A stretch of 64,000 nt of DNA, taken from Syncephalis fuscata S228. Taxonomy: Eukaryota; Fungi; Zoopagomycota. Of this stretch, positions 1-49,797 are shown one piece after another; positions within the stretch are counted from its first letter, which is position 1; each line of letters starts with the position of its first letter. The stretch lies in assembly GCA_025786725.1 (NCBI GenBank), contig JAHLTZ010000009.1, forward strand, positions 310,001 to 374,000, read 5' to 3'. The position numbers and the translations under genes are program-made. The notes under the pieces are model-generated. The model searched no databases, was not told the DNA's origin, and saw only the letters and a list, made by a program, of their open reading frames with translations.

Positions 1-386
1 CGGAAGCAGCTCATGGCACGGTGACTCGCCATTACCGCGAACACCAAAAGGGCCGCGAAACGTCGACCAATCCCATTGCTTCTATCTTTGCCTGGACCCG
101 TGGCCTTGCTCATCGTGCTCGTCTCGATAATAATGGTCCATTGCTTAAATTCTCCGAAGAACTTGAACGAGCCTGTGTTGAAACGGTTGATGTTGATGGA
201 CAAATGACTAAAGATTTGGCACTAGCCATTCACGGTCAAGATGGGTAAGTAATAGCAATATCTTTTAATATACAATTTTCTAATTAGTATATTATAATCT
301 ATAGATTAAAACGAGAACACTATGTGACAACAACCGAGTTCATGAATGCCATTGAACATCGATTCAAGCAAATTCATGCGCCATAA
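1..386 (+). CDS. IDP1: NADP-dependent isocitrate dehydrogenase, 3' end (5'-truncated by window edge)
   Basis: [12 protein letters not shown]...[20 protein letters not shown]...MTKDLA motifs. Intron 245-304 (gtaagt..atag); last exon [29 protein letters not shown] at 384-386. Confidence 0.95.
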
Positions 387-527
387 ATAAATATCATCAT
401 TTATTGATTGAAGCATTTCTATTTTGTGCTAATTTCAATAATAAAATACGCACAATGACACAGACCAACAAGTGTGATCATCATTCATCAATACTAATAG
501 GCTAAAAATTGAAAATGCAGTAAATTA

Positions 528-1816
528 TCAACAGTTTGCAATCATCTTTTCAAGCTGTTCCTTAAAAGCGGTGGCAATATTGGCATCTTTTACACGTAGT
601 AATATTCGCGTCATTTTACCGTCAATAGAGACAAGTGTTTGAATATCTTTCTTTGATTTACCAATAATATCAAGTGGCATACCTTTATAGATACGCACAT
701 TAAGTAAAAGACCGCCTGTTCCTTCAATACGACATATAATTCTAGATCTGGCCGTGTCTTCTTTCTCTTGATTTAAACGTAGTTCTCCCAAACCTTTTTC
801 TACAAAACTCTTATCAATAAAATGATATATCTTTGCTCGTGTACTATAGACGGTATCTTCATTCTCCTCGCCTACTCTTGCTGATGCTGAGGCAGGCTCG
901 TACTTGCTGTATCATCGTCAGCATCATTGTCTTCGCCACCGCCATTAGCATTAGTGCCATTCTCGTCTTCATTCTTTGTTGTACTATCACTACTCTTTTG
1001 CTCAATGGCTGGCTTACTATTAAACGATAATAAACTACCTCCTGATGTATTTGGAGAGGTCGATGTAGATCCAAACGAAAATGGACTTTTAGCAATAGTG
1101 TTTGATGTGGTCTCACCAAATGAAAAGACTGGTTTTACCGTAGTATCTGCGTCTTTTGGCGAACCTTTGGTTACTGATGTGTCGCTACTGGTAGATTTAG
1201 TCGCTCCAAACATGCTAGGTGGATTAAATGACGGCACTTTAATCGTACTAAATAATTGGCTCGATGTCGTGTCATCATTAGTGGATTTTGTTGATTCAAG
1301 TACAGCGGGTGGATTGAAGGGTGCTACTTTAAATGTGCTGAACGATTCATTTGAAGATGCTGATACTGATGTTGAAGAGCCAAAGGTAGTTGCTGTTGCT
1401 ATTGTAGATTCAGATAATGGTTTTATACTTTTCTCAAATGATTTTTTACCCTCTGTACTATCTTTCTTATCAATAAATGATGTCAATGAAGTTGTGGTGG
1501 CTAGTTTGGGCGATATTGTCGCGCTTTCGTTTTCCATGGATTCTTTCTCGTGTTGAGTAACGTCACGATACTTTGTTTGGATCTCTTGCAAATGATTATT
1601 GTATTCATTTTGGAATATTGACAGATCAGCAAATGGATTGTGCTCAATAGTCTGAGCAATGTGTTCGTGAATACTAATGTTTAGTCCACGCAGACTGCAG
1701 TAATAAGCTTCTTGACGGGATTGACTAATATCGCTTGAAGTTGTTGGTGTTGATTGTGTAAGTGGGGAGGAACGGGTAGGTTGGAATATATTAGAACGTG
1801 CGCGTTTCGCGTCCAT
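528..1816 (-). CDS. Nup2/Nup50-like nucleoporin with FxFG motifs and C-terminal Ran-binding domain; apparent frameshift near 900
   Basis: ATG at 1816 (MDAKRARSNIF). FSFG/PFSFG motifs, then RanBD-like GEENEDTVYSTRAKIYHF..EKGLGELRLN..RIICRIEGTGGLLLNVRIYKGM in a different frame. Confidence 0.8.
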
Positions 1817-3005
1817 TGCTGCTGTGGTAGTAAATGAGTGAGTGATTGCATACGTGAAAAGAAACAACACGCTAGTAACGATTAACTACGGAAAAATACT
1901 GAATGTTATGTTGTGTTATGATTATTGTCAAAGATTTGATTCAATATAGATTGAGTACTCGACTCGATACTATTTTGTTTTTAGTAATATCAGTAAGAAA
2001 GATGTAAGATACAATTAAAAAAATTATATTCATTTATTGTGTTTTGTGTCTTTATTAAAATAAATGAAATATTTTATCTATATTTTATAGTATTTACATA
2101 TTGTTAATGTTAGTACAGTCGCTTCTTCAATTATCAATCAATATATGACACATACACTGTGACGCCCAGATGGATGCAATACAGACTGAATAGTGTACCA
2201 ACAACAATGAAAGCGAATAAAGCGGTGGAATATCCAATGTGATTTGGTATTTTTTTCAAGCTACTTCTAGACACTTGGTTTAATCGTTCATGGTTATTAA
2301 TATGCAATAAAACGCAAATAATCTAAAAATGTAATTAAACAGCAATTTGATTAAAACATAGAAATAGATTGTAAACATTAATTAAACTTTGTGATATCTA
2401 TTTATTGCTTAAATACATGCAAGCAATCGATGCAGCAATAGACATTCGCTATCGCGCAGTGACTAAACAAAAAGGTATTGTTATTCAGAATAACATGAAT
2501 AAATTGTATTTATTATTCTTATTATTCTTATTCTTATTCCAAGTGTACTAAACTGTGAAAAATGCGATAGCAAGCTGCGTGACATTTGTGCAATATTAAA
2601 TAGTTGTACACTAAATATCTACTTGGTTGTATATATTTGAATAAATGTATTGTACTAGTCTATATTTTTAGACATTTGCAGACATTCTGTTTTTATAATG
2701 ACACTTGTATTGCGATGTTCCAGCAACAATTGAATCTAGTTTATTGTGCAGTACAACTGTTGCCAAGAATGCCAGGGGCGATAAATATATTGATTGTGCT
2801 ACGGTATAGTTGACTATTTAAATGCAGTAATAGTTATTTTGTCCCATGTTGGCGATGGTATTTGTGAAATATGAAGCATTTTCTCGGTCATTGGCTGGTT
2901 GGCTCCATTTAATATATGGCGTGTTCTACGGCAGTTTCAATAAAACAGTTGAACAGATTACACTAAAATAACTTAACATGGAACAAGATATTTTAATTGG
3001 TTAAC

Positions 3006-3794
3006 TTACCTGCCAATAAAATAAAAAAGTGTAGAAAACTGTCTGGGTTTATCAAAAAGTAACATAACGATCCAGCCTATATTACAAATTACAGCAAAGC
3101 ACATGAATACAATTCCATCACTAGCTAAGCGTCTCCAGATTTTAGAACCAAATCTAAAATATTGTTTATAGGCCATATAGCTGAATACTGACGAAAGAAA
3201 TACATTAACAGCCACAGACGTGCAAAATCAACACAGAGCTAGAAAACTTGCATAATGCGAAAGAACACGGCGATAAAAACGACCGCCAATATTACTATCA
3301 ACCATTAACACGAGAATTGTGAATACTGTTCGTAGAATGGCTAATACTATGCCTATCACAAGCACCCAGCTATTTCTATGAGATATTGTATATGCTTTCT
3401 GCAGTAAAATGATTTTGTAGCACACAATAGTTATAAGAATAACCAACCCATAACAGTGTGGCAATATTTTTAATGGAAGTATTTTTCTAAAATCAAAAAT
3501 GATTGTAAGTACTGATACGCCAATGCATAAAACTGAAGGTATCAAGCAACACCATCTTGCAAGTGCTCGCGGCTGCTCTATAACTAATCGAAGGGCAATC
3601 TTGATATTGCGCACTTGAATATAGTTTATAATAACATGGGCTGCGAGCTGTAGCCAAATATATATTAATTGTTTTCGCATTTCTTTCAAACTATCGGGAG
3701 TTCCTTTCATAACTTCGTAAGTGTCCATCGGGTATGAATCAGAAGATATAATAGGAAACGGATTGGATGCATCTCCATTTTGTGATGTTCTCAT
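3006..3794 (-). pseudogene. Degenerate member of the 7TM/GPCR-like family with an in-frame TGA
   Basis: WCCLIP, ILLQKAY and FSYMAYKQY..FGSKIWRRLASDGI motifs shared with paralogues. In-frame TGA at 3228-3230 where paralogues have W (YWF). The terminal exon after the donor at ~3010 is not delimited. Confidence 0.75.
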
Positions 3795-6953: not shown

Positions 6954-7942
6954 ATGGGGTTTATGAACATTGAAATGGATCCTCTTGGGGAGGAGCACAT
7001 TGTTGATTATATTATGGAGGCTGCAAATGACAAAAAGCAATTTCAAATTCGAGCCCATGGCCTGCAACTCCAATTGGCCATCAATGTTATGGTTGCTTGC
7101 GTCTTTTCGCGTAATTTATACTTTTCCATTAAAATGCTTGTGGCAAAACCAAGAATGTTTGCCGGCTGGTGCTGCTTAATTAGTTCTATCCTGGGCGTTT
7201 CACAAGGCGTAGTATTTGCTGTCGGCTTTCTTTCAGGCAAGCTGGGCTGTCGAGTTATTTATTGGTTTGTCATATTGGTTGTGGGTGTTATCACTACGCT
7301 TAACAATGCAATTATGCTGCATAAAGCATATCTAGCGCTTCGCAGGCGACGTTGGATAATCTATATCGGTGGTCTTTGCTTATTGCCGCAGTTAAGCTTT
7401 AGTTTTGTCGTCTTGGTTAATTCAAACGTTGGAATAAACAATGATTACGGCTGCACTCTTCACTATGAAAAGTTCATACCTTGGTACTGGTTTGGATCAA
7501 GCATACCGATAAGCATTATATTCTCGGGGATCTTTAGCAATGTAGCTTACAAACAATATTGCACCTTCGGTTCAGATGCATGGATGCGTTTAGCACGCGA
7601 TGGTCTGCAAACCATGTGTCTGGCCGTCATTTGCAATATTCTTTGTGGCGCCGGCACAATTCTAGAGATAGGCGGCCAATATTCAGCTTATTTCTTTTTC
7701 GCTGATTGGTAAGTAGTAAATGTATGGATATTTGTACACTGTGCGCTAATCATCATTACAGTTTAATTATTTCCGTTGTTTTAGTTCATTATTGTATTAG
7801 TATATCCGAAGCAGGCACCAAAACAACTCGTTCGCAGAAAAAACACTCCTACACTACCAACATTGGTATCTGTGAAACAGTTACATCATATAACGGACAG
7901 TATTCATCGAATAATAACTTGTCGTCGTTTTATAAATATTAA
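6954..7942 (+). CDS. 7TM/GPCR-like membrane protein, lineage-expanded family
   Basis: PLGE, GWCCLIS, LHKAY, GCxLHY, PWYWF, FSNVAYKQYxxFGSDAWMRLARDGLQTMCL, FFADW; conserved intron after the DW motif, then a short C-terminal exon to TAA 7942. Confidence 0.8.
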
Positions 7943-22971: not shown

Positions 22972-24038
22972 TTATCTGGAGCCAATTGCACCTTTTGTTA
23001 ATAATGAAATTGAGGCCCAATCAGCATCATTATTATCCTGTCGGTTGCTGTCAGTCGAAGGGTGGTTATGCGGTGCATCCTCTGGCTTAATGTGCTGAGA
23101 AAGTTCGTTTGCTGACAATTTTGAGGATTCAGCCGTCTTGCGCATGTTACAACAATGGTCTACTAACACGCTTGTTGTAATCACCCTAAATATAAGTTAG
23201 TAATAGCAGGTATATCGTAATCAGCAACTTACCAATCAGTAAGGAAAAACATTTCTGAAATGTTGCCACCAAGTCGAAACATAATAATAAGGCCACAGAT
23301 AATATTACATAAAATTACGATGGACATGGTTTGAATACCGTCACGAGCCATACGTTTCCACGCTTTTGAGCCGTATTTTTGATACTGCTTGTAAGCCACA
23401 TAACTAAAAATGCCAGAAAAGAATGCGTTAAGTGGCACGGCTGAACCAAACCAGTACACTGGCAAGAAAGTAGGATAGTTAACAACACAGCCGCTTGCAG
23501 AGTTTAGAGTTATTGGACTAAGCATCCATGCAATGTACATGTAGCCCAGTTGCGGTAACATAAACAACCCGCCTACAATTAATACCCAGCGTGGTCGACA
23601 TAGCACTAGGTAGGCTTTTTGAAGCAGAATAACACTATTGCACAGCAAAGAGAATGTAATAGCGAATCCGACATACCAAGCTATCTTTCGACAGGTCAAG
23701 CCTGTAGGAAATAATGATAATGCTGCAATGATGCCAACGAGCATGCCAAAGAGTGAAGGCAGTAGGCAGCACCAGCCTGGAAGTGTTCGGATGCGCATCA
23801 TCACCATTTTTCTAGCAATATTAAAGTTGCGTATAAATATACTGGAAAGTAAAATATTAAATATTAATTGGTGATATAATCCCTGTAGACGTGCGCGGAC
23901 TTGATCGGCATTATTTGGATCTCTTAATACAAAATCCCCTATATCCATCTCGCCCAATGGATGTAAAGGTATGCTCCATAGCCGAGTGGCATTTGCCTCC
24001 CATCCTTCTCTGGGTGATGCGCTATCTTCATAGTCCAT
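22972..24038 (-). CDS. 7TM/GPCR-like membrane protein, lineage-expanded family
   Basis: WEANATRLWSIPLHPLGE, GWCCLLP, LQKAY, FSYVAYKQYQKYGSKAWKRMARDGIQTM, FLTDW followed by the conserved intron. Confidence 0.85.
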
Positions 24039-25383
24039 CAAAATAAATATGGAGTAAATGATTGAATACAAAAAGAATATTAGCAAGTGGGCCAAGCGGA
24101 AGAAGAGACTATTAGGTGCGAGATCAACAGGTAGAGGGTGGGCCGCATACTGGCATTTGTTAAAAGTAAGCAGGTTTTTGTGCTTTGATTGCAGTATAAC
24201 AGATTATATAAATGGTAATAGCAAGTAGACAATGGCATTGTACATGTGGTTTCGCGTGGTTTAAGTTTACCCGAAAATGATGCAGTGATCATACCGGAAT
24301 TGCCAAATCGCCTCTATATTGATTAATAATAAACTGCATATTTAAATACTGTACACTTTGAATATCTAAATATCTTATTAACACTGCTAATATCTAGAAA
24401 GTGTTGGTGTATGTTTTGCACTCTTTGCAATGATATTGATGGTTTAAAATAGTTGAATAGGTCTAGCCTGCTGTCTTGTCCATTTTATATTAATTCGGCA
24501 AATAGCAAAGGCTTTAGCTTGCCCTGGCATTTCGGTTACACGCCGTTTGGCCGTTTCAATTAAACTGCTCTAATAATACCTATGAAATGACAAATCAACA
24601 AAAATAGCAACATTTCTACATTGCTAAATCTGGCACCGTGTTGCGTTAATAGCGTTAGATGGTAAAAGACAGCAAAAGATATAATAATAACAGAGATCAT
24701 AAAATGGTATTTGTTAAATGCTCAATTTCCTTTTATAGTAATAACAATTAATTTTTACAACTCCGACAGGAAGTGCTAACAACGGCACATCAGTATCGGT
24801 GATGTAAAGGATATCCGCAAGTGTAACACGGTCTTTTTTCTTTTACGTTTTCTACACAGTACTTTACGCTATGAATCTCGACGCGGAAAAGTCATTATTG
24901 CAAGTAAGTTTAGTACGTGCTATTTTGTAATGAATACAAACGCATTGTAGAAACTATTAAATCCAGCTTCTGGTTCAAACACGTTGTCGCGTGATTCTTT
25001 GGTTCAAAGGCCAGCTGAACCCACGCCACGCGCAACCAATCCCTTTGCCGTACAAACTGGTTCAGTAATAAGAATAGCGTCGCTAACCCAGGTGGAAACT
25101 TTAATGCGCCGCTCAGTCTATTGACAAGCCAACAGCCACTTGCGGCATTGCATTCAACAAGTAAAACACCAGCAAAGATGTTCAAGACAACATGTCTATA
25201 GACTTTTGCTTATTTGGCCAACAAAATTGTCTCGATCAAAGCGAGCAACAGATTTCCTCCTATGGATATTACGCAAAATAAGATGGCATTATCATATAAT
25301 CAGCAACATGAAAGCACCAGTACACATAGGTTGAAAAAAATACGCGTTTCCCAGTCGCAGTAGCTATAAAATCAAGCGAAGGT

Positions 25384-31034: not shown

Positions 31035-32041
31035 ATGGCGGACTTGAAAGAAGAATGGAAGCAAAACGCCACTAGTATATTAGGAATTCGACTCCATCCA
31101 TTGGGCGAAATATCCTTGCCAGACTTCGTCCTAGAGTCGGCAGACGATCGGGAGTTGACGCATATAAAGCTGACTGGTATTTACCGCCAGCTTATATTTA
31201 ATTTGCTCGCAGCACATTTGTTTGTATACAATTCTTGTCTTGCTTTTAAGATGATACTGGCTCAGCGACGCTCTTTTCCCGGATGGCTTTGCTTAATTCC
31301 TGCGGTGATGGGGATGGGAGCGGGTCTTTTAGCGGCACTATCCATATTTCCTACTGGGCTGAATTGCCGCAAAATATCATGGTATGTTGGGTGGCCATGA
31401 TCGCATCGGTGTTTTGCAATAATCTCCTTGTATTGCAAAAAGCCTACCTGGTGCTATGTCGGAAACGCTGGGTATTGGTAATTGGGCTAGGATGTAGCGT
31501 ACCACAATTACTTCCTATGTACTTTGGATGGGCTTCTAGTCCCGTCACCATCAAGGCTGACACCGGATGTATTGTCCACTACTCGTATCAGTTTCCCTGG
31601 TACTGGTTTGGATTAACAGCACCTATCAATGCATTCTTCTCTGCTATATTTGCCCATGTGGCATATAAACAATATCGCACATTTGGATCTGATGCATGGA
31701 AGCGTTTAACGCGCGATGGTATTCGAACGATGTGTCTTGTAGTGCTGTGCAACATTTTCTGCGCTACTGGAATTATTATAAAACTAGGTGGCATGTTTTC
31801 AGAAATGTTTTTACTTGTCGATTGGTGAGTGGTAAATAATTATACTAATTAAATAGCTAATATAAAACATAGGCTTTTTACGTCAACTATTCTTGTAAAT
31901 CATTGCTATAGTATGCGCAAAGCAATTGCACTGTCGAATCGCCCGAAAACCGAGAATATGTTGCGCATAACTATTAACGGCGGAGAAAATCGGCCCAGCG
32001 ACGAGCATACATTTATCAATCATTCGGCGCAAACACGCTAA
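31035..32041 (+). CDS. 7TM/GPCR-like family member with a 1-nt frameshift at 31389-31391 (pseudogene or sequence error)
   Basis: WKQNATSILGIRLHPLGE..KISWYVG, then in the shifted frame VAMIASVFCNNLLVLQKAY..RDGIRTMCL..VDW; intron; last exon to TAA 32041. Confidence 0.8.
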
Positions 32042-32372: not shown

Positions 32373-33070
32373 ATCATTTCCATAGAATAAAATTGATTGT
32401 AACAGAACATTGTATTAGTAGTTGCTATTTTAAGCATTTAAATAAAGAATGTAACATACTATTTGATTTCATTGAAATTCACAAGGCCTATCATTATTGT
32501 TGTTGGCCATGCGTAGAAATATTAATCAAATATTAATAAAAGCCATTGATTGCAATTCCATGTCGTTTTGCTGTTGTTGTTGTTGTTGTTACTACGTACA
32601 GTGTGGCTTTTTTGAATCTAACTGCTCTTTTCTATTTTCTAATATTCTACTGTTGCACTTTGGACATATTTGCGATGTAAAATACTCGTCTATGGTGGCA
32701 AAAAGATAGGAAGACTAGCGTTTCTGATGTTCACCATTGTCTTGAGGATTCTTGGTATTAACTTGGTAGGCACAGTTTATTTATCGACCATCGATAAAGC
32801 AAATGGCCTCCACCATATGCAATAGTGATAGGTTAAGCTTATTTACCAAAGTATACGGCATGCCGTTGATGCCACTTGAACAGGTGTTGATGTAAAATAA
32901 GATAAATAAAGAGATTGATAATGTTTTTTATTGATGTTCAAATATGCATGCTATCCATATTGGTATAGTTGGTATTATCACATAATATATTACTGAATAA
33001 AAAAATAAGATAGCAATAAGAAAAGGTGGTGAAATGAGTAAATAAAAATGTGGAAGTCAAAGTAAAAATG
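32373..33070 (+). repeat. Dispersed AT-rich repeat, copy A
   Basis: Near-identical to 36667-37265 (ttgttggccatgcgtagaaatattaatcaaatatt...gccacttgaacaggtgtt); degenerate inverted copy at 37790-38355. Confidence 0.85.
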
Positions 33071-34172
33071 ATTTGATCATGTAAACATTACGCGCTCAAT
33101 CCAATGTTTTGTTTTATTGTAATATATAGCTATAATCTTTTATTAATGACTAATAAATAAATAAATCTGTTTTTCTATTATTGCAATAATGTATAATATC
33201 AGCTGCTTACTCTGATAGATAATTAAATTAAGCTTTGTAATACTTGGTTTAGTCTGTGGTCGTATAAATATAAGTATATATGGTTACAATGGAGTGTAAA
33301 TATTCATCCGTACAAACAACCAGCATTATAAATTATAATGACAATAATAAGCTATTTAACTACTAAACTCGTTAATTCAATTTTATTTACATCTATCTGT
33401 TTTCTGTGTGTTATTTTGGTTTAACGTTGCTGCTGTTATGGTCGCATCAGCAACAGCCAACTTTTGATAAATTTAGTCTAGTTTAGCATAACTATAATAA
33501 TTTGCTATAAGTTAAACCAGTAAATCTTTAAGTTGCTAATTGTTTTTCTATTGGTTTCTGCTTTGGCTTGTTTTTCTACATTCTATCCTGCTTAACTTGT
33601 CAAAAGTGGTTTCAGAAATTTAAGCAGCAGTTAGGCCTTGGATGATTACCAATTGATACGCAATCCATTGACATTATGCATTCAAAATTGCCGATATTTG
33701 CCGAGCTATTTGATGTGTCTAGTCTAGTTTTTGTATATTTTATTGTATAGAATTTAGCTGATGCAATATATTTACAGCTGAAAACCGATGACGAAAATAA
33801 CTTGTTGGAATGTTCCATTGCTCAAACCTCTGCAATGCATCATGATACAAACGGCAATTATTGTATAGTCGATTCCGGGTGCTTTAGATTGGCTGTCTTT
33901 GACTGCTGGTGGTTGCACAGTCTGTTACATGTTGTACCTGGATGTAATGCATTTGTGAATAAGACAATAATTGCCCCATAACAATGGGCATAGTGTCGAA
34001 TGAAATGCATACATGTACCAATCAATACATTTTATAATTTAAGGAATCACAACTGGCTTATGTGTGGCAGTAAAAACCCGTATAAAATACCAGTTTGATA
34101 CGATAAACTTGTTTTTGTGGCAATGTTGTAAGCTACTTGTATGTATGTAAATATTGGGACCCGAGTTGCTCG

Positions 34173-34694
34173 GTGGAAGTGACAGCAAATACATCATTAT
34201 TGTTTTACAAAACCAAACAATATACCTGTTTTTACCAAATAGTTAAATTGTGTAACAAAAATACAAGCGAATATGTTTATTTTTATCATATATACTGGAT
34301 TATGAGCACTGCTAAAGTACTCGTGCAAATAAATAAGAGCTTGAAGTAAAGACCGGGCAGGTTGTGCGCTGTTTAGTATGCATATAGATATTAAGGGCCG
34401 AATCGGTAGGAATGGCGGCAAAAATATCATTATTGTTTTACAAAACCAAGCAATATGCTTGCTTTTACCAAATAGTTAGACCGTGTAACGAAAATACAGG
34501 CGAATATGTCTATTTTTATCATATGTACTGGATTATAAACACCGTTGCAGTACTCGTGCAAATAAATAGCAGATTGAAGTAAAGACCGGGCAGGTTATGC
34601 ACTATTTTGTATGCATGCGGATATTGAAGACCGAATCATTAAGTGGAAGTGACAGCAAAGACATCATTATTGTTTTATAAAGCCAAACAATATA
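34173..34694 (+). repeat. ~235-bp tandem repeat, ~2.2 copies
   Basis: Unit gtggaagtgacagcaaa..catcattattgttttacaaaacc..gtactcgtgcaaataaata..ttgaagtaaagaccgggcaggtt recurs at ~34173, ~34406 and ~34643. Confidence 0.85.
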
Positions 34695-34798: not shown

Positions 34799-34999
34799 AT
34801 GAAGCTTTCTATTGCCGCTGTTTGCACTATTGTCGTAGCTCTTGTAGCCAGTACAGCTATGGTGGATGCTAAACCAGCCTTAATTCGTCGTGATTACGAT
34901 AGCTGCATGTTTGAATGTCGCATGGGTTGTTCCTATCCTGATTATGGAATGATTTGCAAAACCGTTTGCGACAGAGAATGCCGCCGTGCTAACCCATAA
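34799..34999 (+). CDS. Intronless secreted 6-Cys peptide precursor (CxxxCxxxC-x8-CxxxCxxxC); paralogue of the micro-exon gene
   Basis: MKLSIAAVCTIVVALVASTAMVDA-KPALIRR-DYDSCMFECRMGCSYPDYGMICKTVCDRECRRANP*; AATAAA at 35240-35245. Confidence 0.88.
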   Translation: MKLSIAAVCTIVVALVASTAMVDAKPALIRRDYDSCMFECRMGCSYPDYGMICKTVCDRECRRANP

Positions 35000-36666
35000 A
35001 CTCGTAACCCATAACCATAAAAGGATTAGCATTGGTAGTGCAATCAAGCCACTATTTCAATACACTTTAGATATATATTCGGTGAAAAGCAAGACCATTT
35101 GACAACTACGCCGTCTAGTATATCTATATATTAATTTTTGGCCAATGCTCCGGTTTATCCAGTCTCTAATCAATGGAATCATTGTTTTATCAACAAACTT
35201 GCATCTAGTTGTTTTTATTCAACTGTGCAAGCTTATAGTAATAAACTTATGGTTTCATCTTAACTATATACAATCAAATTGATATATCTATAATTATATC
35301 ATGTAAGCTATAAACATCGATTGGTATGGATAGTAGCAAAGCTATCATTATCATATAGCCAAATAATATTATACTGAAATTAGAGTAAATACGCTTTTTA
35401 ATAAAACATGGCAATAAAGCATACAATATTATAAACAAAATAAATAGACAAAACGAATACGTGAATAGTGATAGTGAAACTATACTGTATGCAATTAGCC
35501 AATAGTAATGAACGAAATGGATCAAAATCTGCTAAAATAATACAGTTAGCAATAAACTTTTAGCTTTTATTAGTATAGTTTTTACAATTTACAATATTAA
35601 TAATATAGACGGACATATAGTATATGTATAAAGGATAGATATGTACAGTACAATAATAATGATAAATAAATAGCTTAATAATCAATGACACTCAACAGCC
35701 AGTTTTATCTTCAATAACACAAATATTTAGTTTAAATGTGTGGCTATTATAGCTATTTAACTGCCAAATCACACTAAACAACCAATAGCATGCTCAATAT
35801 TGTGGAAAAAGTTATCTTTATTTAGTTAATAAAATATTATAAGATTTAATACAAATCAAGTGGTTTAAATGATCCGTCATAACACCCTTTTAAGCTTCTT
35901 TCGCCATGTCCCACAACTCTTTTTAAATTAGAACATTGGAGCGACTACTGCAATGTTTAAAAATGAACGTTACGAGTAGATTGTTCTAGTTTATCAATGA
36001 CAAATGCCATGTTGGCGGTTTTATTTTGCACATCTTCACTCTTGCTTGATACACCAGCTAATTAATTTAAGTTGATCAAAGCAATAATACATTCATGTAA
36101 TTTGAAATTGTTTAATTGCTAAATCTGATATTTAAAACGCTCTAGATAAACCAGTATAATTTTATTTGTTGATTAAATTTTAAATTTAAAAATATTTATT
36201 AATTATATCATTTTTGTTTGCATTACACTTTATTGAATAAATTTAAACTGCTAATGAAACAGCTATTAAAATAAATAAAAAACAGTTATTTCAATATTAA
36301 CTACTAGTCCAATATCATTAGTGTTAATCCTTACATAGCATGTTTTTGTAATGTATTTTTGAGTTGTATTTGCCACAAGTATATTGTTGAAAGTCTTTTA
36401 ACAAATAAAATACAATTTGCATTGCTGTTGATATTACTATAATCAACTAAATTATGTAAATAAGCAAAATTTTAAATTAAAATTTGTTGCATTATTTAAA
36501 AAAATCTTATTAGGCATTTTTAGCTTTTTCAGAATTCTCAATTTTACTTTAACTCTTATATTTTGAGTCTTCAAAGCAAACCTGGTTTTAATTGAAAATA
36601 TGCTGTTATGTACAAAAAACATAGCCATAGTTTTTCATTTAAAGACTTTAAAATTTATAAGGTTAG

Positions 36667-37265
36667 TTATTGTTGTTGTTGGCCATGCGTAGAAATATTA
36701 ATCAAATATTAATAAAAGCCATTGATCGCAATTCCATGTCGTTTTGCAGTTGTTGTTGTTGTTGTTACTACGTACAGTGTGGCTTTTTTGAATCTAACTG
36801 CTCTTTTCTATTTTCTAATATTCTACTGTTGCACTTTGGACATATTTGCAATGTAAAATACTCGTCTATGGTGGCAAAAAGATAGGAAGACTAGCGTTTC
36901 TGATGTTCACCATTGTCATGAGATTCTTGGTATTAACTTGGTAGATGCAAATTATTTACCGGCCATCGATAAAGCAAATGGCTTCCACCATATGCAATAG
37001 TGATAGGTTAAGCTTATTTACCAAAGTATACGGCATGCCGTTGATGCCACTTGAACAGGTGTTAATGTAAAATAATAAAAATAAAGACTAGGGATTAAAT
37101 AATGTTCTTTATTAATATTCAAATACACGTGTTATTTATATTGTTATATTCAACATTATTATATAATATATTACTAAATAAAATATTTAAAAAAAGATAA
37201 GACGATAAGATAGCGATAACAAAAAAATAGTGAAATGAGTAAATAAAAATGGAGTGTCAAAGCAA
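36667..37265 (+). repeat. Dispersed AT-rich repeat, copy B (direct)
   Basis: Near-identical to ~32493-33070. Confidence 0.85.
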
Positions 37266-37789: not shown

Positions 37790-38355
37790 GTTATTTTACT
37801 TTTACTTTTCTATTTTTATTTATTCATTTCACTCCTCAACACAAATACAATTAAACACTCATTCATCACTATAACACGTATAATATCGCATCCAATATTA
37901 ACTAATTCATGTGTAATTATCAATACAATAATATAATTAATTAGTTATCTTTATTATTGCTCTAACATACATATATAGCCATTTATTTAGTCAGATTGGC
38001 TATAGGAAAATGGCTGTTTAATAAACGACATTTATAATAATTACATTAATATTGATCTTACATTACAAATATGCCCAAAATGTAATAGTAGAATAGTAGA
38101 AAATAAAACAGACCATTCAGATGCAATAATCCACGCTGTATGTAGCAACAATAACAACAACTGCGGAATGACATGAAATCACAATCATATGGCTTTTATT
38201 AATATTTTATCAATCTTTCTACACATGGCCAACAACAATAATCGGCCCCAAATGTTTTAAAGAAATCAAATAGTATGTTGCATTGTTTATTTAATGTTTA
38301 TATTATTACTAATATAATTTTTTGCTACATTTAATTTTATTTTATGGAAATGACA
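37790..38355 (-). repeat. Dispersed AT-rich repeat, copy C (inverted, degenerate)
   Basis: 38055-38355 is a reverse-complement match of ~32373-32685 (tttctacacatggccaacaacaataat; gaaatcaaatagtatgttgcatt). Confidence 0.7.
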
Positions 38356-39377: not shown

Positions 39378-40320
39378 ATGGATATGATCGAAGACCTCGG
39401 ATACCATTCAGACTGGCGGCACAATGCCACGCGTCAATGGGGTATTCCGCTCCATCCAAGCGGCGAGTTATATTTGTACGATTACGCAGCCTTAAGAGAC
39501 GACAGACTGTCCACGCAACAACTACTATTAAGCATTTATTTCGAGTTATCTGTTGATTTAATGATGTCGACTTTGTTTGCACAAAACTTTTTTAAAGCTG
39601 CAGTTATGATTATTAGACAGCCAAACTTTCTTTCCGGGTGGTGTTGCATAATTCCCGCCTTTCTTGGAGCTGGCTGGGGAGTGGGTGTAGTTTTATATCT
39701 TCTTGGGCAAACAAGCTGTCGGCCTGTAGTTTGGTTCTTTGTTTTTGCTACTTCAATTTCCAGTATAAGCAACAACATAATCATACTGCAAAAAGCCTAT
39801 ATTGTTCTGATCAAGCAGAAGCTAATACTGGTTATTGGCGCTCTGTTTATGATACCGCAAATGGTATTTATGTTTGTTTTTCTATCCTCCTCCTGGGTCA
39901 CGACAAATGTTCAAGGAGGCTGTGCCATCCATTATGCTCCCTCAATACCTTACTACTGGTTTGCTTTAAGCATACCTATTAACGTCCTATTTTCAACGTT
40001 ATTTAGTTATGTGGCCTATAAGCAGTACACCACATTTGGAACTGAAGCCTGGAAACGACTGGCGCGCGAAGGCATACAAACGATGTGTCTGGTGGTAATT
40101 TGTAATATTATTTGTGCAACATGTCTTCTACTTGAAGTAGGAGGCCAATTTGTAGATATGTTTTTTGTCGCAGACTGGTAAGTATTTGACAAAATACTAT
40201 TAGATAATTGCTAATATTAGTAACAGGTTGATTACATCAACTATTTTGGTATATCATTGTAGTACAGCAAGGAAAAACGTGGTGCGTCAATATCAGTTGG
40301 GCGTTGCTAAAATTCACTAA
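39378..40320 (+). CDS. 7TM/GPCR-like membrane protein, lineage-expanded family
   Basis: WRHNATRQWGIPLHPSGE, GWCCIIP, LQKAY, FSYVAYKQYTTFGTEAWKRLAREGIQTMCL, FVADW; intron; TAA 40318-40320. Confidence 0.85.
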
Positions 40321-45670: not shown

Positions 45671-46078
45671 TGAATAGTAGTACTAATATAGCTATACTGC
45701 TTCATATTGGTGAACAGTTTATAATTCCTGTACAAGTCTGATATTGGTATGCTTGTTCGATTAGTGTTGTTAATTATTATATATAAATTAAATACAAACA
45801 TATGCAACAAATTATTGCTATTATTAAAATGAAACCATAGATTTATTACTATAAGCTTGCACAGTTGAATAGAAACAACTAGATGCAAACATGTTGGTAA
45901 CATAATGATTCCATTGATTAAAGACTGGATAAACCGGAGCATTGGCCAAAACTTGATATATAGATAGACTGGACAGCGTAGTTGTCAAATGGTCTTGCTT
46001 TTCACCGAATATATACCTAAAGCGTATTGGACTAGTGGTTTGATTGCACTACCAATGCTAATGTCTTGAAGCCATTGA

Positions 46079-49026
46079 CTATTCTGTATTTACAAATAAA
46101 GATATTATATGGTACATAATTAATTTATACTCTACTAATATAATACTACTTACTGCCTATTAGTATTAAGTTGTTGATACACATGGTGCATAACATGTGG
46201 TTAGTGCGTAATTAATTAATATATAATACAACCTACATTCATCTAATATTAATTAGTTGATGGATACAGTAAATAGCATGTAGTTAGTGAGTAACCAGTT
46301 AGTATACAATATAGCTTACCTTCTATTGATATTAATTTATTGCCGCACACATTACATGATGTATAATCAGTGCATAGTTAGTTAGTACATAATACAACTT
46401 ACTGCCTATTAATATTAAGTTGTTGATGCATATAATACATGACACAATTAATGCATAATTAATTAATACACACCATAACTTACATTCTATTATATTAAAC
46501 AATTAATGCAATTAGCAAATAACATAGTTAATGCATAGTCAGTTAATATACAATACCACTTACTCTCTATTAATATTAAATAATTGGTACAATTGGTAAA
46601 TAGCATAGTTAATGTATAGTCAGTTAATATACAATACCACTTACCAGCTATTTATATTAAATAATCAGTACAGTCAGTCAATATTATAGTCAATAAGTAG
46701 CCAGTTAATATGCAGCACAACTCACCGCCTGTTGGTATTAAGTTGTTGATTTATACAGTAAATGGCATGTGGTTAGTACATAGTCAATTAATACAGAATT
46801 TCACATACAATCTATTAATAAGGTTGTTGATGCATACAGTATATAGCACATAATTAGTGTTTAGTTAGTTAATATGCAGTGTTACTTACTTTCTATTGAT
46901 ATTAAATAATTGATATAATCAGTAGATAGCACATAATTAGTGCATAGTTAGTTAATATTTAATGTTACTTACGACCTATTATATTAAATTGTTGATTTAT
47001 ACAGTACATGGCATGCAATTAGTAAATATTCAATTAATACATAATACAACTTACGACCTATTATATCAAGTTGTTCATGCACACAATACATAGTACATAA
47101 TTAGCTAGTAGCCAATTAATACACAACATAACTTACGAACTATTAATATTAAGTTGTTGATACACACAGGACATGGTATATAGTTAGTGCATAGTCAATT
47201 AATGCGCAATACTACTTACTTCCTATGGTATTAAGTTGTTGATAAACACAATACATGACACAGTCAGTGAGTAGTCAGTTAACATACAATGTTGCTTACT
47301 CGCTAATATATTAAGTTATTAATATACACAATACATGGCACATAATTAATACATGATTAGTTAATATACAAGGCTACTTACCGCCTATTAATATTAGGTT
47401 ATTAATATACACAATGCATGGTATATGGTTAGTCAATACTCAATTAATATATAATATAACCTACATCCTATTAATATTAATTTGTTGATACACGGTGCAC
47501 AATATAAATTAGCACACAGTCGGACAATACACAATGCTACTTACTCTCTATGGTATTAAGTTATTGATACACATAGTGCATGGTATAGAATTAGTGCATA
47601 GCCAATTGATATACAATGTTACTTGCCCACTAATATATTAAGTTATTAATATACACAATGTATGACACGTAATTAATACATGATTAGTTAATATACAATG
47701 CTACTTACCGCCTATTAATATTAGATTATTGATATAGACAATACATGGTATATGCTTAGTCAATACTCAATTAATATATAATATAAGAGAGGGGGTACGC
47801 GAAGAAGAAAGAAGAGAACTAATAAAAACAGCAACAAAGACGGCATTGGACTTCGTATGGAAGAAGATATGGAAGACAAGATGCAAGCAAGTGGACGAAG
47901 CAATAGGAAGATGGAAAACAGTACGTACCGACACACAAATAGCAGGTCAACCAGAACCACAAGAAGGTCCGGCAACAAACGCTGAAGGCCAGAGAGGCCT
48001 GAGGCAAATTTATACCTGGGACCACACCAATAAAATGGCGTTCGACGTCGAACGCCACCTAAAGATGGTGGCCCCCGCGTGGAGTCTATAGGACCCGGCT
48101 CCATGCAAAAACGTGGCGGTCCACTCGGTATCAACAATGCTACATTGTTTAATATTTTAAAAGCTTTATTATAATTAACGCGATAACAGCATGACACTGA
48201 GAAGCAGCACAAATTCTTTAATTATGCGCAGCGGGGGCCCACAAGCTCTTCAAAATAAAATAAAATAAAATAATATATAATATAACCTACATCCTATTAA
48301 TATTAATTTGTTGATACACGGTGCACAATATAAATTAGCACACAGTCGGACAATACACAATGCTACTTACTCTCTATGGTATTAAGTTATTGACACACAT
48401 AGTGCATGGTATAGAATTAGTGCATAGCCAATTGATATACAATGCTACTTACCGCCTATTAATATTAAGTTGTTAATACACATGGTGCGTAACATATAAT
48501 TAGTGAGTATCAATTATTATATAATACAACTTACATTTAGCTAATATTAATTAGTTGATGGACACAGTACATAATATATAATTAATGCATATTCAATTAA
48601 TATACAATACAACCTACCAGCTATTGATTTGTTGATGCATACAGTGCATGACATATAATTAATGAATAGAAATTTAATGCACAGTACAACTTACGATCTA
48701 TTATATTAAATAATCGGTACAATCAGCGAATAGCATATTTAATATATAATCAATTAATATACACCACAACTTACCCTCTATTAATATTAAATAATTGATA
48801 CAATTAATAAATAGCATGTGATTAGTGCAGTCAATTAATATACAATATCACATACGAGCTATTATAATAATTATTTAGAAATACCGTTAGTAAATAAAAT
48901 GCCATATCATATTCATTGTTATTGCAACATACCACGACGAACTAAGGCTGGTTTAGCATCCACCATGACCGTAGCGGCTATCAAAGCCACAACGACGATG
49001 CAAACGACGGTAATGGAAAGCTTCAT
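46079..49026 (-). CDS. Micro-exon gene: 30 exons (28 of 3 or 6 nt) encoding a 62-aa secreted 6-Cys peptide precursor
   Basis: Exon 1 49026-48933. Micro-exons (+ strand low coordinate): CTC 48856, AGG 48775, ATC 48695, CTG 48618, CTAAAT 48535, GCG 48453, AGA 48371, GAT 48291, GCG 47709, TGG 47627, AGA 47545, GAT 47465, GCG 47382, CGA 47300, GAA 47220, TTC 47137, GTC 47055, GTC 46973, AAA 46890, ATT 46809, GCG 46726, CTG 46645, AGA 46564, AAT 46484, GCA 46403, AAG 46320, ATGAAT 46237, GCA 46154. Last exon AATAG 46083-46079. Every micro-exon is flanked by YAG and a GT (one GC) donor. Confidence 0.88.
46140..48870. repeat. ~80-84-bp tandem repeat array (each unit = intron + micro-exon)
   Basis: Unit acttac-NNN-ctattaatattaagttgttgatacaca...ttagtgcatagtcaattaatatacaat, ~28 copies. 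Confidence 0.95.
47787..48270 (+). mobile_element. 5'-truncated non-LTR retrotransposon (LINE-like) insertion with 15-bp TSD
   Basis: TSD taatatataatataa at 47772-47786 and 48271-48285; (TAAAA)n tail; ORF open from the 5' junction containing VWKKIWKTRC. Empty site visible in the duplicated unit at ~47441-47467. Confidence 0.85.
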
Positions 49027-49797
49027 GGTGATATTGATTTGTTAAGACAAACAAATAAAAGGATAGTAGAGTGTGGTTGATATAGAGTGAAAAGTAGTGC
49101 GTGTATAGCAAGAAGTAGAGTGTGATGATGATATTGCAGTTGGTTGTGTATATTTTGTAGGCTATTTAAATCTATGGCTACGCTGAAATCCCAACAAGAT
49201 GTACTGAATAAACTGTTCCATTGATATGTAGTGTGAACCAATAACAATACATCCATGTGGTGGCATGAGGTGCATGCATACTAATGAATCAATGGCATGA
49301 TAGCATAAGACCCGCCTTTGCTTCGACCTGTTCAGCATCTACACAGCCAATGATCCAGTATGTGTGTGATAGAGATACACGGATTAACCTGTATTTTATT
49401 ACACAATTCAACTATTGGATGTAAGCTAGCTGTTATGGTGTTCAGGAGGGAACACCATAATATTTGCAACAGTATGATAGCTTATAATCAAAGAGGATCA
49501 AAGTATAATAGTGCCCATAAAGTATTGAAAATTTTATTCTATAATAGCATAGTGCCGAATGAAAGATGAAAAGATATGGCTACAGTTACATTTTCGATGT
49601 AATAAAATATATACTAAATAGTAAATTTATTTGTTTAAGCGGGTATTGTTAACATTTTATTAATGTGTAAAACAATATGTGATTTATAGATGATTGAATA
49701 GTAATCCTTTAAAAGAGAAAGAAGAGTGGCGTCCAACAAAGCTGCAAGCAACAAAAAAGATGCCACTTAATGTATTCGACGATGCACTGTTCAGCAA

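Follow-up and report, generated by a model that had tools for sequence, protein, structure and literature searches.

Background

The closest described counterpart of the gene reported here is the nank (NACHT-ankyrin) family of Tuber melanosporum, for which tens of 3-bp exons and alternative splicing are reported (Iotti et al. 2012, PMID 22289772, as cited in PMC4986451, PMC10197012 and PMC13449251) and whose codon-sized exons are treated as lineage-specific (PMC13449251). The micro-exon genes (MEGs) of Schistosoma have exons of at most 36 bp and are described as schistosome-restricted (PMC8293314). In the pea aphid, the KQY and KHI cassette effectors have exons of at least 6 bp in genes of 12-87 kb (PMC7495047). 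Single 3-nt exons occur in Coprinopsis.

We examined a locus in a 64-kb stretch of DNA from Syncephalis fuscata (hereafter the window, to which all coordinates refer unless another locus is named). Over the 20,406 nt compared (locus L004), the window agrees with S. fuscata contig JAHLTZ010000009.1 without a mismatch. Syncephalis are mycoparasites belonging to the Zoopagomycotina. The gene resembles nank in having tens of codon-sized exons (26 of its 28 internal exons are 3 nt long) and in belonging to a fungal family with a putative part in host or nonself interaction. The nank proteins, however, are intracellular NLR receptors, come from an ascomycete and carry the exons in their sensor region, whereas the S. 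fuscata exons would encode the mature portion of a secreted peptide in its entirety, lie in phase 1, belong to a zoopagomycete and are accompanied by intronless copies.

With the Schistosoma genes it shares a putative signal peptide followed by short symmetric exons, a parasitic owner, membership of a gene family and retroelements nearby or inside. Short symmetric exons (36 bp or less) account for 28 of its 30 exons and 90 of its 189 coding nt, and for the mature peptide except the last codon. It differs in that 96% of the exons in the S. fuscata arrays are 3 nt long, the introns are copies of one unit and there is no homology; all homologues of its leader come from S. fuscata, outside the Schistosoma lineage. 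A conserved secretory cassette joined to divergent mini-exon bodies is common to the aphid genes and the S. fuscata gene, which by contrast spans 2.9 kb, has 3-nt exons and repeated short introns, and shows no homology to them that we could see. The window gene works like the nank, MEG and aphid genes and belongs to none of these groups.

A preliminary description of the locus knew of no comparable run of 3-nt exons in fungi. The Tuber genes are such a precedent, and what appears from the sequence to be new is that whole secreted peptides are written in this way. In a literature survey that covered mostly open-access papers, we found no report of whole secreted peptides in 3-nt exons, of the S. 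fuscata family or of arrays of this type accompanied by intronless copies.

Results and discussion

Anatomy of the gene

The gene is read from the minus strand and has the following parts:

49027-49180, minus strand: putative 5' UTR and AT-rich promoter element, by homology to other family members 5' of the ATG
49026-48933, minus strand: coding part of exon 1 (94 nt; 31-residue leader plus one base; phase-1 donor)
48291-48858, minus strand: micro-exons 1-8 with introns of 74-79 nt
48858, 48777, 48697, 48620, 48540 (6 nt), 48455, 48373, 48293, minus strand: first bases of micro-exons 1-8
46154-47711, minus strand: micro-exons 9-28 with introns of 77-80 nt
47711, 47629, 47547, 47467, 47384, 47302, 47222, 47139, 47057, 46975, minus strand: first bases of micro-exons 9-18
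46892, 46811, 46728, 46647, 46566, 46486, 46405, 46322, 46242 (6 nt), 46156, minus strand: first bases of micro-exons 19-28
46079-46083, minus strand: coding part of the last exon (last two bases of the final codon, then the stop)
45819-46078, minus strand: 3' UTR common to all family members (71-94% identity to array and intronless members)

We recovered the array with two parsers, the second of which left core length free between 1 and 30 nt and returned the identical 28 exons. As the preliminary description had proposed, these consecutive micro-exons are 26 cores of 3 nt and two of 6 nt; every core is preceded by AG and followed by GT or GC. Its exon 1 with a phase-1 donor, its 29 introns and its 189 coding nt (62 codons, stop included in the nucleotide count, in 2.9 kb) were confirmed as well. 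Two of its statements need qualification. The repeat of about 82 bp is a head-to-tail tandem repeat with a period of 81-83 and introns of 70-80 nt, except that intron 9 is 579 nt long and holds a 484-nt insertion. Each exon does carry one codon's worth of sequence, but every codon is split 1+2 over two exons, so that an exon supplies the last two bases of one codon and the first base of the following one. Exons 6-9 and 10-13 form a duplicated block, introns included.

The 29 donors comprise 18 GTAAGT, four GTAGGT, three GTATGT, two GTAAGC, one GTGAGT and one GCAAGT, and the 29 acceptors 27 TAG and two CAG. None of the 26 window introns of normal length has an extra AG in its last 45 nt; without a second AG near the 3' intron ends, these sites look as used acceptors would. 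Elsewhere in the window the AG-core-GT pattern gave isolated matches only.

The leader in exon 1 has a hydrophobic N-terminus (hydropathy peak 3.8) and a short propeptide ending in dibasic RR, and the layout of the last exon recurs at the ends of three other arrays (L008, L009 and L131). As had been claimed, the joined frame contains no internal stop; the absence of stops at the phase-1 junctions is weak evidence alone (p 0.06 with exon order shuffled). The six-cysteine pattern is also as first described, at junction codons 7, 10, 14, 22, 26 and 30. All six window exons that end in T precede an exon that starts with GC, giving the six cysteines, an arrangement with p ~7e-5 under shuffling, which is an optimistic value because the repeat units are partly duplicated.

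Public annotation misses the gene, in line with an earlier expectation: model KAI9596839.1 (58 aa) ends at 48621, within the array, and a separate public model lies inside the intron-9 insertion. Two public models, P0007 (48621-49026) and P0012 (L010:10001-10601), match the first junction residues. Since neither could be rebuilt with canonical splice sites, we did not use them as RNA support.

Coding constraint across six arrays

Among the 178 internal exons of six parsed S. fuscata arrays, 170 are 3 nt long, four are 6 nt, and one each is 15, 21, 27 and 2 nt. Thus 96% are 3 nt and 177 of 178 are multiples of 3, counts that include sixteen low-scoring exons added by eye and that, when pooled, overstate independence because the arrays are related to each other. 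Runs comprise 17 to 40 exons per gene. The sole non-multiple lies in a G run of L008, where the twin unit carries three G; this 2-nt exon (L008:13806-13807) is a frameshift or a sequencing error. In L009, near 10250, one unit has seemingly lost its acceptor, leaving a 139-nt intron.

Splice dinucleotides are 98-100% constant over 136 units, against 49 different core triplets, and the GC content of the same units is 0.51 in the cores versus 0.21. Near-identical pairs of units differ by 5% in the flanks and by 60% in the cores. Branch-point-like words lie at varying distances among the arrays, and the L001 units have no CTRAY. Four arrays yield six cysteines, one is Gly-rich and one Ala/Ser-rich; in three arrays a longer exon adds a second dibasic site.

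At adjacent junctions of the six arrays we counted one stop (terminal, in L008), compared with about nine expected. At junctions formed by skipping one exon there were seven stops against 7.1 in shuffled order for five arrays, and seven against about nine once L131 was added; L131 itself has none (1.9 expected), and L001 likewise has none. Judged from these frames, selection shows for the inclusion of every exon but leaves no trace for skipping.

These counts bear on whether exon skipping turns one locus into a cloud of peptides, a somatic diversification that would be compatible with the explanation we prefer. With symmetric exons throughout (phase 1-1), no skip would shift the frame, the Tuber nank and Schistosoma genes provide precedents, and L131 and L001 are free of stops at skip-one junctions. 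However, the pooled skip-one stops of the five arrays stand at the shuffled level while adjacent junctions are purged, each skip rewrites the junction codon and often loses a cysteine, and the intronless copies discussed below keep the full six-cysteine frame, one of them at exact array spacing. We regard somatic diversification as the purpose of the array as rather unlikely. Because skip-one stops are at chance level and adjacent stops are purged, diversification between genomes or paralogues, presumably by unit duplication and conversion, is favoured over diversification within the cell.

Intronless relatives as copies of the spliced message

We compared the exons one by one with natural intronless references. 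Directly after the leader and in fixed register, window exons 2-5 match 15 of 15 nt of the intronless P0015 and 14 of 15 nt of P0006. With the stop taken as anchor, the last window exons also agree with P0006 and P0011. P0015 and P0006, the nearest intronless relatives of the window gene, lie on other contigs. The sister array L131 (35 exons), offset by one codon, agrees with P0015 at 73 of 108 nt. Their residues are identical at 19 of 36 positions, at five of these despite a synonymous change, and the six cysteines coincide. The best of 200,000 shuffles of exon order scored 58, and none reached 73. In other words, the L131-P0015 match and those of the window gene indicate that the exons are colinear with real contiguous reading frames.

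This colinearity bears directly on the reading of the locus as a non-coding satellite with splice-like words inside one long intron. Such a satellite would be a tandem repeat, as is the array with its period of 81-83, and constant-core repeats in metagenomes (at least 33 loci) fit our search pattern too. Against it stand hypervariable cores that are ordered to avoid stops and to place cysteines, with lengths in multiples of 3 (177 of 178), and cores that run colinear with intronless genes; the L131-P0015 match refutes it in practice, and we hold it to be extremely improbable. The spliced micro-exon gene model of the preliminary description is instead supported by the frame statistics of the six arrays, the conserved splice signals and the contiguous intronless paralogues. 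Full splicing of the window array, at present or in the recent past, is very probable.

The window also contains an intronless gene:

34799-34999, plus strand: intronless paralogue with the same leader, a six-Cys mature part and the same UTRs; outside the public protein set

The preliminary description had pointed to this paralogue. Leader, cysteine spacing and UTRs are common to the two genes, including the 3' UTR homology, which extends to the whole family, but the mature part is unlike the array cores at the DNA level (z 0.2), and we rejected the gene as a processed copy of the window array. It shares approximately 1.4 kb upstream and 1.5 kb downstream with the array locus L131.

In an unrooted tree of leader and 3' UTR, array and intronless genes are interleaved, with two changes forced by well-supported branches and five on the best tree; their separation into two clades is rejected (p-AU 1.35e-5). 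All arrays have one common intron unit and one first-intron position, so that repeated loss of all introns at once, through cDNA, would be the simpler reading. The reverse history would start from intronless genes, each invaded by a mobile introner-like element once per codon. The introns are homologous and cluster by array, and near-identical introns in L008 flank unrelated cores, as insertion into an existing frame would give. This history would, however, need 18 to 41 insertions per gene, every one in phase 1 and at a spacing of 3 nt, and would need them in each of several tree lineages. Moreover, the first and last introns are orthologous among L004 (the public-contig copy of the window locus), L008 and L131, exon and intron blocks have been duplicated together, and the unit is unseen outside the family in the window and the fetched loci. 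We judge invasion by introners improbable.

Repeated loss through cDNA could have taken two forms. The 34799 gene and L005 have retained long flanking stretches that are also present at array loci, as would be expected if the gene had been replaced at its original site. For the L006 copies the shared sequence is limited to about 50-105 nt on the upstream side and about 255 nt on the downstream side, as would be expected of processed copies. No poly(A) tracts were found 3' of the intronless genes.

The family in Syncephalis fuscata

A profile of the 31-residue leader, searched against 1.84 billion proteins, retrieved 16 cluster representatives and no match from outside Syncephalis. With three more, at least 19 annotated proteins carry the leader, all of them S. 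fuscata hypothetical proteins. The leader is 61-77% identical across the family, and the bodies are Cys-rich, Gly-rich or Ala/Ser-rich. The product derived from the transcript, sought through its leader in protein collections, was not found, a weak result since clustering there hides close sequences.

Behind this leader, S. fuscata has at least seven arrays among the fetched loci, namely the window, L001, L008, L009, L010, L131 and a damaged one in L002. Six members at fetched loci are intronless or nearly so (window 34799, L002, L003, L005 and two in L006). The damaged array (L002:12373-15107) has ATA in place of the start codon and two weakened acceptors; an intronless member whose cysteine pattern is similar is found 2 kb away. 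In P0017, P0004, P0014 and P0016 the leader is joined to unrelated, longer bodies.

Several other features of these loci can be recorded. A 233-bp tandem repeat lies 5' of the intronless paralogue (34170-34694) and likewise 5' of L131 and L008. Around the paralogue there is also a 450-bp dispersed repeat, with direct copies at 32461-32912 and 36637-37087 and a partial inverted copy at 38142-38294; related pieces flank L131 and L001. Five similar multi-pass, receptor-like membrane genes (3228-3794, 6954-7712, 23229-24095, 31035-31828 and 39378-40181) are apparently one expanded family.

A retroelement in intron 9

The insertion in intron 9 has the following anatomy:

47787-48270, plus strand (antisense to the gene): 484-nt 3' end of a LINE-like retroelement with an A-rich tail
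48271-48285 and 47772-47786: 15-nt target-site duplication of the insertion

Without the insertion, intron 9 is 80 nt long and 75 of these 80 nt are identical to intron 13. The insertion ORF is cut at its 5' end, the anatomy of a 5'-truncated LINE, from which we infer that the element is one. It is 98.6% identical to a longer copy (an 800-nt fragment) in L002, which encodes a Cys/His finger-like motif in its ORF. A Pfam search of the insertion fragments, which are too short for it, gave no reverse transcriptase or endonuclease match. Related fragments lie 14-20 nt after a donor in L001, L002, L008 (three) and L009, all of them antisense. The elements may prefer this site, and may have been the source of reverse transcriptase for the family.

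Insertions of this kind raise the question of whether the window copy is a silent relic, once spliced and no longer fully so, for example through the intron-9 retroelement. The insertion is recent, and other members are decaying (L002 has lost its start codon, L008 has the 2-nt exon, and several carry retroelement inserts), so the window copy could be silent today. However, all 29 donors and acceptors, the frame, the cysteines and both UTRs are intact, and the frames of L001 and L009 are open despite similar inserts. We consider a relic unlikely. The window copy is probably still expressed as the full splice product.

A proposed mechanism

The array gene is likely to encode a short, Cys-rich secreted peptide from an S. 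fuscata family in which the leader is constant and the mature parts vary, and we extend this judgement to the explanation as a whole, including the evolution set out here. In fungi with short introns, these are recognised end to end. The spliceosome would remove the short introns singly in this manner, so that a 3-nt exon would itself need no recognition and the main useful product would contain every exon. If neighbouring introns are spliced in turn, end-to-end recognition means that exon size is not limiting. One-by-one removal with inclusion of all exons is a well supported step, and the near-consensus donors may compensate for the variable exon side.

Signal peptidase and a Kex2-like protease cutting after RR, a pathway taken from established knowledge, would then free a 31-residue peptide with three possible disulfides, predicted to fold as a disulfide-tied helical hairpin. 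Processing and fold are moderately supported. An AlphaFold model of the intronless P0006 is a helix-loop-helix of low confidence (pLDDT 58). With its paired CxxxC on two predicted helices, this low-confidence model resembles the alpha-hairpinins, from which it differs in having six cysteines rather than four; the sole Foldseek match, 7qxj, a hairpinin-derived peptide, is insignificant (E 9.5). No Pfam domain, NACHT and ankyrin included, was found in the leader or its relatives, and the intronless members gave nothing significant against Pfam, PDB sequences or Foldseek except an SVWC domain in P0017 (Pfam, E 4.7e-7).

Tandem units of an intron plus three bases would allow unequal exchange and conversion to add, drop or rearrange the peptide codon by codon, with selection holding the frame and the cysteines meanwhile; this step is well supported. 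Occasionally the spliced mRNA would be reverse-transcribed and would replace or copy the gene, giving intronless members, an origin likewise well supported. For the peptides, the likeliest role is against the host fungus or against competitors where the parasite meets them; this is guessed by analogy and from the way of life, and we give it even chances.

Similar arrays beyond Syncephalis

We scanned metagenomes for three units in a row and obtained at least 120 stretches; because the pattern selects 3-nt cores, exon length provides no independent test there. At least 62 stretches have variable cores. At least 33 matches with constant cores and a period of about 72 nt (L011, L029, L054, L117 and 29 more) are probably satellites or CRISPR arrays and were excluded as ordinary repeats; three further matches were excluded for their poor parses.

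Among the matches listed, stops are depleted in 14 AT-rich contigs (2 versus 10.4 expected in phase 0 and 1 versus 7.7 in phase 1) and number 14 versus 45.4 expected in phase 0 of 48 other contigs. The domains point to a fungal origin. In L026, exon arrays lie inside ankyrin repeats that follow PNP_UDP_1 and winged-helix domains, an architecture also reported for Tuber; two of these arrays (L026:5340-7818) occupy successive repeats. Arrays of the Tuber nank type, within or just after ankyrin-like repeats, also occur in L076, L078, L083, L115 and L129.

Other contexts were seen as well. Short arrays of 3-nt exons lie 5' of HET-domain or similar frames in L104 (5013-5366), L015 (4113-4613), L047, L119 and L019, with HET domains following those of L104 and L015. 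The L095 array (148-3291) precedes a kinase, and it, L098, L033, L075 and other AT-rich contigs have introns of 89-98 nt 5' of kinase frames; by composition and kinase type we take these contigs to recall Glomeromycotina. L038 (2800-3737), L128 (3915-4560) and L027 (minus strand, starting near 1635) hold genes that look like further secreted-peptide genes: a signal-like exon, with a basic site at or close to its end, is followed by phase-0 triplets. In each of the three, the first triplet behind the basic site encodes Gln. A single intron unit is common to about ten contigs of the L027 assembly. Long TA-rich arrays in regions without open frames (L130, L091, L064, L057 and L102) have possibly decayed by repeat-induced point mutation.

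The metagenome intron units are no more similar to the S. fuscata unit than shuffled controls are, and the identity of the nank-like units to it is at most 0.04 above shuffled. Such dissimilarity suggests separate origins of the arrays.

Conclusions

This gene architecture is probably widespread among fungi and masked as repeats; the arrays resemble satellite DNA and are hence mis-annotated. A bolder reading, which we offer tentatively and hold to be somewhat doubtful, is that the array is a dedicated generator of peptide diversity at codon resolution, in which recombination and conversion between homologous introns shift, insert or remove single codon units, whether or not skipping is added, and a resident retroelement with a preferred site in the intron unit provides the reverse transcriptase that fixes successful variants in intronless form, and that this design has arisen independently in at least three fungal lineages. 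If true, one design would serve secreted peptides, NLR sensors, HET proteins and kinases, unseen by annotation.

The window gene offers a natural test of the spliceosome on 28 consecutive exons of 3-6 nt. The family would present intron gain by tandem duplication and intron loss all at once, with both states in one genome. For S. fuscata itself, a mycoparasite with a barely known host interaction, it brings to light a set of related candidate parasite peptides that had lain hidden.
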